In this document: piece after piece, positions 1,260-5,667 of the stretch
How the letters are laid out: every line of letters begins with the position of its first letter
How positions within the stretch are numbered: position 1 is the stretch's first letter
Virus record (IMG/VR): IMGVR_UViG_3300023192_000822
Location: 1 to 6,015 of that record
Direction: 5' to 3' (one strand)
Length of the DNA: 6,015 bases
Notes under the pieces: generated by a model
Databases searched by the model: none
What the model saw: only the letters and a program-made list of their open reading frames with translations
What the model was told of the DNA's origin: nothing
Program-made: the position numbers and the translations under genes

Positions 1260-1487
1260 TTAATTCATATTAAAGCGTTGCACAACTACTTCATAAGGTA
1301 AAGTATTTACCACCGTGGGGCCGTGTTCCAATTCTAATTGTCTCCATACTAGCTGTAATAAAACCTGATTAAATATGGGGCCAATCTTTTCCGTCACTAT
1401 AGTATAGGCTTGCATAGGGTCATTAGGAAAAAATGGTCTAACGGCTTCTAATATATCTTTATATTTTTCTTCGTTATTATTAATCAT
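1260..1487 (-). CDS. Hypothetical protein, 75 aa
   Basis: ORF track. TAATG coupling with the upstream peptidase gene; ends immediately before the hairpin cluster. Confidence 0.7.
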   Translation of the reverse strand: MINNNEEKYKDILEAVRPFFPNDPMQAYTIVTEKIGPIFNQVLLQLVWRQLELEHGPTVVNTLPYEVVVQRFNMN

Positions 1488-1954
1488 TAAAGTATAATTA
1501 AACCATCCTTACAAGTATATAGACCTGTTCCTATTCTACTAGTCACAAACTTGTCTGATTGCGGTTCAAATAATTCTGCTGTGCCATCGGCAAAGATGAC
1601 ACAATTATAAGCGTGTCCACCCGAATAGTCAATGACCAAGCCCACATTGTTTAAGTGAAATTTCCTATCCATCCTAGCTTTAAAGCTAAAGGCAAAATTA
1701 TCACAGTCATACTTTTCTGCTACGTACTTCTTCTTATCCGTCCAATCCCAATTAATAATAGCTTCAAAATCTAATCTACCACATGCCCAATACTTAGAAT
1801 CTAAGTGTTTACGTTTCATTCCCGCATTAATTATTTGCTTAGTTATTAAAGCATTATAAATAGTATTAGCACTTAGTTCAGTATAACCTTCTGCTAAAAT
1901 AGGTGGGGTTAATTTATTGGACAACTCTATAAGTTTATTGGCTATGACTCCCAT
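1487..1954 (-). CDS. Papain/transglutaminase-like cysteine peptidase, MOA lectin C-terminal (Agglutinin_C)-like family
   Basis: Motifs YxxEKYDCDNFA (Cys), GHAYN (His) and FEPQ (Glu) match the Cys-His-Glu triad layout of the Marasmius oreades agglutinin C-terminal protease domain and its prokaryotic/phage homologs. Confidence 0.8.
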   Translation of the reverse strand: MGVIANKLIELSNKLTPPILAEGYTELSANTIYNALITKQIINAGMKRKHLDSKYWACGRLDFEAIINWDWTDKKKYVAEKYDCDNFAFSFKARMDRKFHLNNVGLVIDYSGGHAYNCVIFADGTAELFEPQSDKFVTSRIGTGLYTCKDGLIIL

Positions 1955-2142
1955 TTTTTAATAACCTCTTCTAAGTCATCTAATGCTTTCATAGCATCAT
2001 TTTGGTCTTTCTCTAAATCATCAATCTTAGACTTTAGAATTACAATTTCATTGACCGTAGCAGAATAATCTACTTGGGTAGTTTCCATCTTAAGAAAAAT
2101 AGTTTTAAGCCGTGTAATTAAATCTAGCAAGCGTTCAAGCAT
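1942..2142 (-). CDS. Coiled-coil hypothetical protein, 66 aa (MLERLLDL...)
   Basis: The ORF track starts at 2184. ATG 2142 is preferred because it overlaps the end of the Cys-rich gene and is preceded by purine-rich AAGGATGGGA. Strong heptad periodicity. Confidence 0.65.
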   Translation of the reverse strand: MLERLLDLITRLKTIFLKMETTQVDYSATVNEIVILKSKIDDLEKDQNDAMKALDDLEEVIKKWES

Positions 2143-2329
2143 GTTTATTCCCATCCTTACAACTACAGTTGCCTCCACAAGCACAAACTAAAGACATATC
2201 AGCAGCCCACAGATCAACTAACTCCTTATCACAATCACAATCTTCACATTTACAAGTGCAATCCTCTTCACATTCACAGGTACCCTTTAAAGCATAGGCA
2301 TTAATGCCACAATAACATTCAGTAACCAT
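2135..2329 (-). CDS. Metallothionein-like Cys-rich peptide, 64 aa
   Basis: 13 Cys of 64 residues, mostly in CxC motifs (CYC, CEC, CTCKC, CDC, CACGGNCSC). SD AGGAGA upstream. Confidence 0.65.
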   Translation of the reverse strand: MVTECYCGINAYALKGTCECEEDCTCKCEDCDCDKELVDLWAADMSLVCACGGNCSCKDGNKHA

Positions 2330-2344
2330 TTAAATATCTCCTAC

Positions 2345-2479
2345 TTATGACCTAAATTTTCCCCCAGTAGTAATAGTCTTACCTTGTTTATGACATGGGC
2401 CACACATTGTTCCCGCTTTAGTAGTCTTAGCGTGTTGTTTTCTATTACAACCAGGACATCTTACCCAACTCTTTTTCAT
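2345..2479 (-). CDS. 44-aa basic zinc-ribbon peptide (CPGC...CGPC)
   Basis: Hand-read MKKSWVRCPGCNRKQHAKTTKAGTMCGPCHKQGKTITTGGKFRS. ATGA overlap with the upstream gene; fills the gap exactly. Not in ORF track. Confidence 0.7.
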   Translation of the reverse strand: MKKSWVRCPGCNRKQHAKTTKAGTMCGPCHKQGKTITTGGKFRS

Positions 2480-2631
2480 TTATCAGACTCCAAAATTTTC
2501 ATTCCCAATGCCCCTAATAAAGTAATACACCCCGTAGTAATTTCAATATGCCCTAAATCCAGAGACAATATCGCTATAGCTCCTAACATTAGAATGCTTA
2601 TCAAAATTTGGGGGCGTAAGTATTTCATCAT
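2476..2631 (-). CDS. 51-aa two-helix membrane protein, holin-like topology
   Basis: Hand-read MMKYLRPQILISILMLGAIAILSLDLGHIEITTGCITLLGALGMKILESDK. SD AGGAGA overlaps the upstream TAG. Two hydrophobic segments with charged termini. Not in ORF track. Confidence 0.7.
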   Translation of the reverse strand: MMKYLRPQILISILMLGAIAILSLDLGHIEITTGCITLLGALGMKILESDK

Positions 2632-2929: not shown

Positions 2930-4429
2930 TTATAGATAGAACTCATTATCACGAAACCATTTGGAAAAAGATTTACGTATTGGAAAAGATACATCTATTT
3001 CCGTAGAGTACCAAGGATGCATATTTGTTTGAAGGTCTTTGTGTGCCTTAGCAGCTAACGAAGTATCGTAAGTAGGGGCATCAGCATCTAATTTCGTTCC
3101 CAGATGTGAGCCAGCTTCATTCACTACCCAAGGGGGTTTCATATGAATAGGGATACCGAAATCATCTGTCTCAGTTTCTATGACAGGGGTATACCTCATG
3201 GCTTCCTGTGGCTGTTCCGAAGGAAATCCATACTCCCGTAGTAATTGGTGATGTTCTGCTTGCCTTCCCCCAGTATTTAATAGGGTAGCAAAGGTAGCAG
3301 CCATATCTTTTGACGATGAAGGTTTACCTTGTTTCTCTACCCATGACAAGAAAGACCCAGTAAAATCAATTGACCCATCTGCTTTTTCCATTAACATAGT
3401 AAATTCCCTTCCTTCATCAATAGTTGGAGATTCATCCAGTGGCGCAAAAACTTTACAGTACATGTGGTCTTCAATCATGCCTTCAATTATATCACAGGTT
3501 TGTTCCTGCTTATTAAAGAACTTACAGGTACCACACATAATACCATTTTGCATTTCCACATCAGTAGCATTTCGATAGCCTGCGTCTGGCTGAGTAATTT
3601 TACCTTCTTCTTTCTGAAGAAAGCAACTACCATTACATTCCTGTTTCTCCATCAGACAGCTACCATCAATACAAGTAGACACAGCATCATGAGCTTTCAA
3701 TATATCAAAGACAGCACTTTGATTTACACCCTTTTCACAAACTGTAACTTCTGCAAGTTCCATTTCATCTACTTGCATATAGGGTTGTAAACCTTTCTGC
3801 ATATTTTGAGTTTTGGTTGCGCTTCCCGCAATAGAATAACTCTTTAGCTTACCCTCATTAACTTGATCCATAACCCGCTGTGCAATTTTTGTATCGTCCC
3901 TCAATTCCGTAATGAAGAAAAGTCCATTCTCACCTACACCAGATTTAAAAATCTGCCCACCTTTAGAAATATAGGCGGGTAATGCCCAACCAACTTGAAC
4001 ATCAGAGTGTAGTACCATTGTATTTCTAGTACGAAAATTCCCCATATACTTCTTGAAAGCTTTTTCTAGGGCTTGTGTAGTAATTAAATGGCCCTCTCTA
4101 TCAATTAATTCTACAGATGCGGGGCCACCTAAGATCATAGGCTCTCCCTCACTAAGTTTAGAGACAGCTTTAGAATAAGTTAGGTCATCTGGATACGCCC
4201 TAGCTAGAGTTATAGTTTCTGCCTTAGATGCTATTCCCGCTTTAAGCAAACGTTTATATTCATCAAGGGCATCAGAAATATCTTCTAAAGAAACCTTACC
4301 ACCATCTTGCTTTTCAATGGGCAGTATGGTAGCATCAATACCAACTGTTTGATACATCTCATTATTAGCAGCCCAGTTAGAGGGACTTGGAATATTTCCT
4401 ACTACAGTTTTAATAGCAGAGATTGTCAT
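2930..4429 (-). CDS. Multidomain HK97/XkdF-type prohead (capsid maturation) serine protease fused to Cys repeats, a HiPIP-like domain and an unknown C-terminal domain
   Basis: aa ~98-246: GGPASVELIDREGHLIT, MVLH141SDVQVG, GKLKSYS199IAG, ELAE227VTVCEKGVNQSAVFDILK are typical prohead protease motifs. aa 277-328: C299-x2-C302-x9-C312-x12-C325. Confidence 0.85.
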   Translation of the reverse strand: MTISAIKTVVGNIPSPSNWAANNEMYQTVGIDATILPIEKQDGGKVSLEDISDALDEYKRLLKAGIASKAETITLARAYPDDLTYSKAVSKLSEGEPMILGGPASVELIDREGHLITTQALEKAFKKYMGNFRTRNTMVLHSDVQVGWALPAYISKGGQIFKSGVGENGLFFITELRDDTKIAQRVMDQVNEGKLKSYSIAGSATKTQNMQKGLQPYMQVDEMELAEVTVCEKGVNQSAVFDILKAHDAVSTCIDGSCLMEKQECNGSCFLQKEEGKITQPDAGYRNATDVEMQNGIMCGTCKFFNKQEQTCDIIEGMIEDHMYCKVFAPLDESPTIDEGREFTMLMEKADGSIDFTGSFLSWVEKQGKPSSSKDMAATFATLLNTGGRQAEHHQLLREYGFPSEQPQEAMRYTPVIETETDDFGIPIHMKPPWVVNEAGSHLGTKLDADAPTYDTSLAAKAHKDLQTNMHPWYSTEIDVSFPIRKSFSKWFRDNEFYL

Positions 4430-5352
4430 TAACTATGGACTCCCCAGATGACCCCGCTAACCGTAGGAGTTCCAGACGCAGATACTACTGAGACATTATC
4501 CCTAAAGTCTACGGGGAAATTAGATTCATATGTTGCTCCCGCTAATACAGGTATTCCCGTACTAGAAGACGCAATTACATCAAAAGCTACATACACAATT
4601 TCAGCACTGGTACCTGATTCATTCTTAATCTGTATGCCACGAATAACCGACATGGCAGGACGCTTTCTAGAAGTAGAAGCATTGGCAGTTCCTGACCATT
4701 CGTAATTCAAGCCAGACGCTCCATCAACATAAGTAGACACAGCATTAGTATCTTCCCGTACTTCAAACATAATCTTATCAGTATACCAGTCAATGTTATG
4801 GTTAGCAGCACTAACAACATAAACTCTATACGCTGCTGCTGCGGTACTCCCTACTACTGAATAAGAAGCCGTAATACGTGCAAAGCTAGTAGTTAAGTTA
4901 GTATCGGCAGAGGTAGCCAATTCAGTTCCCGAAGCATCAGTAATCTGTATCTTAACACTTCCTGACGCAGAGGCTCCCCGAACTTCACATTGAGCCGTTA
5001 TGTGTTGAGGATTTACTGTAAAACCAATATTAGGAGACACCCAATAAAAACCCTCACCAGCAGCCGAATTCCCTGGATTGGTGAGGAGGGACGCTGTACC
5101 AACAGACTGTTGGGCAGTACTTCTAGATATAGCTGACCCAGTAGCCGTAAACATTGTAATATCAGCAGCCTCTATTCTAGGGTTCGTAACCCAGTTAACT
5201 GCAATCTCACCCCTATCAATTGCTAATAGGTTTGCCGCTGTCGTAGAGGTTGCCGTTCTAAAGGGGGAATATTTTGTGTACGGATGAACGGATTGACGAG
5301 TAGATGAATCTACTTCCCAGCCCCGTGCATCATTATGTCGTTCATTAGCCAT
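4429..5352 (-). CDS. Virion structural/decoration protein with a carbohydrate-binding-like (CBM4/9-type) beta-sandwich
   Basis: Ala/Ser/Thr/Val-rich. NWVTNPRIE...YVDG...WSGTANASTS resembles the CBM-like modules of phage tail/structural proteins. Lies downstream of the capsid gene; SD AGGAG. Confidence 0.65.
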   Translation of the reverse strand: MANERHNDARGWEVDSSTRQSVHPYTKYSPFRTATSTTAANLLAIDRGEIAVNWVTNPRIEAADITMFTATGSAISRSTAQQSVGTASLLTNPGNSAAGEGFYWVSPNIGFTVNPQHITAQCEVRGASASGSVKIQITDASGTELATSADTNLTTSFARITASYSVVGSTAAAAYRVYVVSAANHNIDWYTDKIMFEVREDTNAVSTYVDGASGLNYEWSGTANASTSRKRPAMSVIRGIQIKNESGTSAEIVYVAFDVIASSSTGIPVLAGATYESNFPVDFRDNVSVVSASGTPTVSGVIWGVHS

Positions 5353-5379: not shown

Positions 5380-5667
5380 TTATTTAGAATACCAATTTAA
5401 AATGCCAACTACCGCAGCTAGGACAACTCCCGCATGGGCAAACATTACAAATACCATCATAGTTAGAGTTTTAGCACCGTAAAATTTAGTACGCCAATGT
5501 TTTAATTCATCTAAATCATAATTAATTCTTGCTAACCCTGCTACTAAAGTTCTATTCAATTCTGTGGAAGTATCTATATAAGTATCTAAACGTTCCATAT
5601 AAACTGCAACTTTGACTTCTAGCTCATCGTCATCCAACGGTTTCATCCGATTTTTCATCTGAGTCAT
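5380..5667 (-). CDS. Coiled-coil protein with C-terminal membrane anchor (XhlA/holin-like architecture)
   Basis: ORF track. Amphipathic N-terminal helix (VAVYMERLD...) followed by a ~25-aa hydrophobic tail. Exact start Met uncertain. Confidence 0.65.
   Translation of the reverse strand: MTQMKNRMKPLDDDELEVKVAVYMERLDTYIDTSTELNRTLVAGLARINYDLDELKHWRTKFYGAKTLTMMVFVMFAHAGVVLAAVVGILNWYSK

Follow-up and report, generated by a model that had tools for sequence, protein, structure and literature searches.

The window analysed here, the complete 6,015-bp contig of IMG/VR virus record IMGVR_UViG_3300023192_000822 in reverse orientation, encodes on its minus strand a 499-aa capsid maturation protease of the HK97 type (Peptidase_S78), and this polypeptide carries a small domain related to high-potential iron-sulfur proteins (HiPIPs). 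We regard the domain, with high confidence, as a genuine member of the HiPIP superfamily that is closest to the short, PioC-like forms. A first-pass annotation of the same DNA had proposed a HiPIP-like domain at 3446-3601, and matches to HiPIPs by profile, by profile-profile comparison and by fold bear this out; the HiPIP consensus given there also agrees with the consensus of real HiPIPs that carry a twin-arginine translocation (Tat) signal. Purifying selection acts on the HiPIP-fold domain, which is conserved across hundreds of marine viral contigs and recurs in several head-protease families. The novelty would lie in the setting of an otherwise familiar fold and cofactor family: another cellular location, another fusion partner, and viruses as carriers. 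To our knowledge, no metal-cluster cofactor is known in the capsid maturation proteases or scaffolds of tailed viruses. No description of HiPIP-type domains in viral head proteases was found in the literature searched, magrovirus papers and the survey of polyvalent proteins included. Automated annotation has already flagged a few cases, namely two homologs with a precomputed Pfam match (PF01355) and two phage proteins by their UniProt names.

Family-level profile evidence settles the HiPIP identity, as the window copy alone is borderline. Against Pfam HIPIP (PF01355) this copy reaches 15.0-15.2 bits (E about 0.03) where the cut-off is 22, and a Pfam scan with the full-length 499-aa protein gave no HIPIP match at E<=1. 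Its best phmmer match in the PDB is the 54-aa HiPIP PioC (E 0.005), in an alignment that pairs the Tyr, the CGTC, a Phe, the third Cys and the final aromatic-Cys. Additional phmmer matches to P2X-receptor and GFP-like proteins were dropped, since they fall on the Cys-rich linker, lack any family support and disappear when a profile is used. For the family as a whole, we took 32 distinct viral copies of the domain alone from DNA references and aligned them (alignment A2). At E<=0.1, Pfam HIPIP is matched by 22 of the 32 copies, with 1.2e-7 as the best value. No other Pfam family is matched by more than four copies. The second is HPIP_like (PF18524), with weak matches in 4 of the 32 (best E 0.0022) and none for the window copy, while zf-MIZ and zf-ANAPC11 were each weakly matched by a single member. 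A PHROG scan of the same 32 copies returned only three families of unknown function, with weak E-values.

The A2 profile, searched against the PDB, gave six matches and all of them are HiPIPs (PioC 4e-7, 3h31 6e-4, 1isu 6e-3). Among 1.84 billion representative proteins it retrieved 1,195 at E<=1e-3, including small proteins with twin-arginine signals; nine of ten such Tat-signal proteins tested pass the Pfam HIPIP cut-off, and it is the canonical relatives in this set that carry the twin-arginine signals. Alignment of A2 to these Tat-signal HiPIPs with hhalign yielded 99.2% probability and an E-value of 8e-20, a comparison in which the Tat-HiPIPs had been chosen from among the matches of A2 itself. 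The sub-threshold Pfam score of the window copy could be read as a chance resemblance of a Cys-rich stretch to HiPIPs. This is exceedingly improbable, being refuted by the viral-only profile against the PDB and by hhalign; the family statistics are decisive and the fold agrees with them.

HiPIPs contain few regular secondary-structure elements; the chain folds about the cubane, and cubane and tetrahedral Zn sites differ in the geometry of their ligands. For the isolated domain, the AlphaFold2 model reaches a predicted local distance difference test score (pLDDT) of 90.2 with hardly any regular secondary structure, as in HiPIPs. Its sole Foldseek match in the PDB is the HiPIP of Rhodothermus marinus (3h31; TMq 0.61, probability 0.77), in a comparison that the first-pass annotation had proposed. 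In BFVD, a library of viral structures, Foldseek found 16 proteins with a probability >=0.93 and TM values of 0.63-0.78. Those at TMq 0.70-0.78 include the two proteins that UniProt names for a HiPIP-profile domain, one of which comes from the cultured Synechococcus phage S-SRM01.

Residues 277-328 correspond exactly to window positions 3446-3601, with the sequence that the first-pass annotation had quoted. The four cysteines C299 (codon at 3533-3535), C302 (3524-3526), C312 (3494-3496) and C325 (3455-3457) are all written 'aca' on the plus strand (TGT on the minus strand) and are the predicted cluster ligands. Their spacing, C-x2-C-x9-C-x12-C, fits the HiPIP pattern C-x2-C-x(8-16)-C-x(12-13)-C, and the aromatic positions conserved in HiPIPs are filled in the window copy by Y287, F304/F305, Y324 and F328. 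Invariant in A2 are all four cysteines, a Gly and an Ile; an aromatic residue follows the CxxC and another precedes the last Cys in 32/32 copies. The C-x2-C...C...C motif is present in 92 of the 120 top homologs, and the domain is all-or-none among them: no copy is missing single cysteines, and all four are invariant in every domain-bearing homolog. Further, among 16 distinct close relatives the domain shows a synonymous polymorphism (pS) of 0.52 and a nonsynonymous polymorphism (pN) of 0.074 (pN/pS 0.14), and synonymous TGT/TGC exchanges are seen at the Cys codons themselves. The domain has no signal peptide, as the first-pass annotation had stated; it is internal (aa 277-331 of 499).

PioC and the other short periplasmic HiPIPs (6xyv, 3h31, 1isu; PF01355) belong to the same superfamily and share the fold and the length of ~50-55 residues, and the spacing in PioC, C-x2-C-x8-C-x12-C, is nearly that of the viral domain. 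Common to both are the upstream Tyr, the aromatic residue after CxxC, the V-x-G-x-I motif and the aromatic-Cys-x-x-aromatic ending. In contrast to the short HiPIPs, the viral domain lacks a Tat signal, is fused instead of free-standing, is non-periplasmic and is encoded by a virus. In addition, four extra residues are inserted downstream of the Tyr and ahead of the first Cys, where they form a short helix (A-T-x-x-E), and the Gly in Gly-Trp-Cys is replaced.

Binding of a cluster by this domain appears likely to us. Iron-sulfur (Fe-S) occupancy, as opposed to Zn, is inferred from the conserved ligands together with the aromatic residues that shield the cluster. Besides the sub-threshold score of the window copy, several points weigh against this reading. 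The E-value of the PDB Foldseek match is weak (0.65), because the domain is tiny. In the model of the full-length protein the domain is only moderately confident, with pLDDT < 50 for aa 300-313. At the Gly-Trp position of HiPIPs the window copy carries Met-Tyr and most relatives carry Asp-Trp, the upstream Tyr is replaced by Leu in one subclade (A2 rows L019-L029 and L067), and four-Cys sites can hold Zn. The cluster might accordingly have been lost, leaving four cysteines that bind a single Zn or form disulfides in a small structural knuckle without iron. Both substitutions fit such a loss, as do the sporadic single-member matches to zinc fingers and the other short Zn- or disulfide-like Cys motifs in the linker and in the clade of relatives that has no HiPIP domain. 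However, HIPIP was matched by 22 members as against one for each zinc-finger family, the aromatic positions that shield a cubane are fully conserved although a Zn(Cys)4 site would not need them, and the model has HiPIP topology; this fold is generally known to form around a cubane, with a ligand geometry unlike that of tetrahedral Zn. We therefore consider a Zn or disulfide knuckle unlikely. Within the Leu subclade, part of the copies have a loop between the second and third Cys that is four residues longer, and copies of this subclade are the best scorers against Pfam HIPIP.

The call of a prohead protease made in the first-pass annotation is upheld by Pfam Peptidase_S78 (PF04586), which matches aa 167-242 with 25 bits (cut-off 21), and by the PHROG 'head maturation protease' (2.9e-15); Peptidase_S78_2/XkdF is a weaker Pfam match of the 499-aa protein. 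Across 35 relatives (alignment A1), His114 (in DREGH) and Ser199/Ser203 (in SYSIAGSA) are invariant, and by analogy with S78 enzymes we infer that they are the catalytic residues. The full-length model has a mean pLDDT of 62 and is reasonably confident for the protease domain (aa ~50-240), where block means mostly lie at 70-90 with a drop to 61 at aa 101-110. Predicted disorder flanks the HiPIP region on both sides (aa 243-277 and 330-343). The polypeptide is built like beads on a string, with the protease, a Cys-containing linker, the ~55-residue HiPIP fold, a second linker and a conserved, partly helical C-terminal region. The domain had been described as lying inside the protease; it does lie inside the polypeptide, where it follows the protease fold and precedes the C-terminal region, and not within the protease domain.

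The linker motif C-I-D-G-S-C (aa 254-259) is near-universal in the protease family, including the clade that has no HiPIP domain, and a second copy, C-N-G-S-C (aa 267-272), is confined to some clades. As a separate observation, the C-x-D-G-S-C linker motif (3602-3694, minus strand) is itself a candidate metal site or disulfide, and the HiPIP-less clade has a short C/H-x-C-x-C motif in the place of the domain. The C-terminal region (aa 332-499) matched no Pfam family. In relatives it lengthens the proteins to about 1,300 aa, and comparison with protease-scaffold fusions suggests that it may be a scaffold-like part or one that targets the capsid. Among the candidates scored, 643 homologs of the protease were found at E<=1e-3; the family is present in 356 IMG/VR contigs and is abundant in marine viromes.

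On a tree of 119 rows built from the protease domain alone, the HiPIP domain is present in 91 rows and two changes suffice to explain its distribution. The domain is therefore inherited vertically together with the protease, with at least one loss inside a domain-bearing clade. It is absent from a clade of 26 rows and from a nested pair within this protease family, and no separate HiPIP-like gene was found in the available flanking DNA of 12 domain-less viral loci. Accordingly, the domain is accessory and not part of the core maturation chemistry, and it is not essential for head maturation.

Outside this family, the A2 profile also matches proteins with head proteases of the XkdF type (P0154) and of the Mu gpI type (P0182, P0179), the latter including P0179 with three tandem CxxC...C...C motifs N-terminal to the protease. 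BFVD adds HiPIP-like fusions to SppA/ClpP-type and XkdF proteases. The survey of viral protease-HiPIP fusions that the first-pass annotation had suggested has turned up further S78, XkdF, Mu gpI and SppA cases. The repeated independent fusion to different families of head protease points to a role in head assembly or in the capsid interior.

A cultured carrier is among these viruses. Pontimonas phage phiPsal1 (MG835450) encodes a 484-aa S78 prohead protease (phrog_80) with a HiPIP-like domain at aa 61-113 and the protease at aa 256-409. Its protease scores 22 bits against A2 in hmmsearch (E 7e-9 in a single-sequence search space), and the isolated HiPIP-like piece matches Pfam HIPIP with E 7e-4. 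The order of domains is opposite, with the HiPIP-like part N-terminal, which implies a fusion that arose independently, and the protein does not look like an ortholog of the window protein; phiPsal1 infects an actinobacterium. In tblastn, the phiPsal1 domain alone found only itself, and its N-terminal 250 aa gave matches to the middle domain only and none to the HiPIP part; BLAST thus cannot count cultured carriers. phiPsal1 makes the question of a cluster in a head protease experimentally accessible.

How the domain might act can be outlined from these observations. S78 proteases are co-assembled inside procapsids, and the domain would be taken into the procapsid with the protease to which it is fused. 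HiPIP clusters are unusually shielded and air-stable, and such a fold would suit a virus of the oxic ocean. We propose that the domain acquires its fold in the host cytoplasm, around a [4Fe-4S] cluster that the Fe-S assembly machinery of the host provides, is carried into the procapsid within the protease polyprotein and would there form a compact, oxygen-tolerant, cofactor-stabilised module with a structural or interaction role instead of a diffusible electron carrier. Taken as a whole, this picture of a [4Fe-4S]-stabilised accessory module in the procapsid seems to us reasonably probable. A precedent for such a role exists in the beta and gamma subunits of benzylsuccinate synthase (BSS), which are non-exported, cytoplasmic HiPIP-fold [4Fe-4S] subunits with structural or regulatory, non-redox function (PMC12590467). 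Like the viral domain, the BSS subunits (HPIP_like, PF18524) are signal-less HiPIP-fold modules of a larger enzyme, and the viral domain might play a similar [4Fe-4S]-binding, structural or regulatory part. They differ in being separate subunits of an anaerobic glycyl-radical enzyme instead of a fused domain, and they show no specific sequence relationship to the viral domain beyond the superfamily.

If a [4Fe-4S] cluster is bound, these lineages would rely on the Fe-S biogenesis of the host to assemble their heads, and the HiPIP superfamily would have relatives with a non-respiratory, cytoplasmic or viral role, extending the BSS precedent. Viral particles or infected cells would then hold iron in a form that has so far not been considered. 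This would bear on ideas such as the 'Ferrojan Horse' hypothesis, which concerns iron in marine phage particles (described in bioRxiv 10.1101/674382).

The domain and the protease are directly joined in four or more protease families, with the domain on either the N- or the C-terminal side. This could also reflect a checkpoint, in which folding, incorporation or activation of the protease needs an intact [4Fe-4S] cluster and maturation is gated by the iron or redox state of the host, the second of the two inferences offered in the first-pass annotation. Open-ocean waters are poor in iron, and the abundance of the family in marine viromes would fit such a gate. However, HiPIP-type clusters are generally known to be among the least oxygen- and redox-labile Fe-S centres and hence poor sensors, the two clades of the same protease that have neither the domain nor a nearby replacement argue against an obligatory gate, and nothing about the disordered linkers in the model suggests that the active site is contacted. 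A checkpoint is thus quite unlikely in our view, and the accessory structural module remains the preferred reading.

A link to head assembly is a tendency and not a rule, since the domain is also fused to proteins other than proteases. These fusions speak against an exclusive tie to the head protease: A2 matches an RNase_H_2 protein and a low-molecular-weight phosphotyrosine phosphatase (P0153, P0230), and the non-protease partners in BFVD are Zeta-toxin-domain, ParB/Srx, HAD and helicase proteins of uncultured phages. About 25 proteins of 150-190 aa (P0141-P0172 range) contain two tandem HiPIP-like domains with no signal peptide; the contigs of P0188 and P0141 are under 1 kb. Many signal-less HiPIP-like proteins of 50-70 aa are free-standing, such as P0161 (61 aa), which is encoded in a phage-like contig close to a terminase; tblastn of P0161 against 50,697 phage records gave no match. 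The set of non-protease partners is reminiscent of virion-packaged polyvalent proteins (PMC5512222).

These partners (ParB/Srx, helicase, Zeta-toxin domain), the flexible linkers on both sides of the domain and the many free-standing versions in phage-like contexts would all suit a cargo, cut out by the protease, kept in the head and ejected with the DNA to serve as electron carrier, iron supply or effector. Yet no redox partner is encoded nearby, and in HK97-type assembly protease fragments normally exit the head ahead of DNA packaging, so we rate an ejected cargo as very unlikely. A broader version, in which signal-less HiPIP-like domains are a widespread and as yet undescribed module of tailed viruses of bacteria and archaea that is dedicated to the interior of the capsid and places [4Fe-4S] clusters inside procapsids through four protease families and perhaps other packaged proteins, is rather doubtful at present. 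If it were true, head assembly would be tied to the Fe-S supply of the host and the virions of abundant marine viruses would be an uncounted pool of iron.

The virus had been labelled a phage, which is probably wrong. Among cultured viruses, the protease has relatives only in haloarchaeal tailed viruses, with about 30% identity over aa 98-263 (tblastn). HVTV-1, HCTV-1 and HCTV-5 are the nearest of these both for the protease and for the neighbouring capsid protein; their tblastn matches stop at aa 263, short of the HiPIP domain, and no HiPIP-like match was seen in their genomes by tblastn. A longer relative of the window (L017) has a capsid gene of the SU10/HK97 type, and the nearest cultured relatives of its product are the same haloviruses and a Methanofastidiosa virus. 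The same pattern of halovirus-like relatedness is reported for magroviruses of Marine Group II archaea (PMC5434244). Archaeal tailed virus is thus probably the better assignment for this marine virus. Another relative, the 87,326-bp contig CAYVWD010000055.1 (L088), encodes a 959-aa protease-HiPIP protein as well as portal and capsid proteins, ThyX and a fragment of RNR. This contig is binned in a metagenome-assembled genome (MAG) of Ca. Nitrosopelagicus, and short relatives are binned with a Dehalococcoidia MAG. L088 may represent a virus that was binned along with its host, or it may be mis-binned, and binning is weak evidence for a host.

The gene neighbourhood invites comparison with the HK97 gp4-type prohead proteases and protease-scaffold fusions, which share the S78 His and Ser, a head module beside an HK97-fold capsid gene, and a C-terminal extension. 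No described member of these has a metal-cluster domain. Unlike them, the viruses studied here place the protease downstream of the capsid gene, and two conserved open reading frames (ORFs) lie between. An SU10-type capsid gene stands upstream of the protease in both L017 and L088, with a portal-like gene in L088, and the local order of capsid gene, 95-aa ORF, 307-aa ORF and protease is kept in about 80 loci. The position of the capsid gene upstream of the protease is unusual. The coordinates of all features are collected in Table 1.

Table 1. Features of the window and of the longer relative L017, with the evidence or context for each; positions are those of the window unless prefixed.
Feature	Position	Strand	Evidence or context
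Capsid (prohead) maturation protease gene with HiPIP-like domain and C-terminal extension	2930..4429	(-)	499 aa; longest ORF of the window
HK97-type (Peptidase_S78) protease domain, about aa 95-245	3695..4147	(-)	Pfam S78, invariant columns, model
Cys-containing linker, aa 246-276, predicted disordered	3602..3694	(-)	Conservation; pLDDT < 50 for aa 243-277
HiPIP-like domain, aa 277-331	3437..3601	(-)	Profiles, fold, pN/pS
Conserved C-terminal region, aa 332-499, partly helical	2933..3436	(-)	Conservation, model
307-aa ORF, directly upstream of protease	4429..5352	(-)	Between capsid and protease genes in 83 related loci
95-aa ORF, predicted C-terminal hydrophobic stretch	5380-5667	(-)	Between capsid and protease genes in about 80 loci
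51-aa hydrophobic (membrane-like) ORF, just downstream of protease	2476-2631	(-)	Kept in 48 related loci
64-aa ORF, 13 cysteines in CxC/CxxC runs	2135-2329	(-)	Downstream of protease in 14 related loci
155-aa ORF	1487-1954	(-)	Pfam Lectin_C_term (E 2e-8, above cut-off) and Agglutinin_C; kept in 9 close loci
Two L017 ORFs, Mom-family and trypsin-like peptidase	L017:15528-16304 and L017:3988-4812

The ATG of the protease gene and the stop codon of the upstream 307-aa ORF overlap by one base (4429). Searches with the 307-aa and 95-aa ORFs gave no family match. The 64-aa Cys-rich ORF, which has only weak metallothionein-like matches in Pfam (E 0.27), is conserved in the related loci and is thus a candidate for a second metal-binding protein in the same module. 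In L017, which is 78% identical, a DNA-modification protein of the Mom family (E 1e-50) and a trypsin-like peptidase are encoded near the head module.

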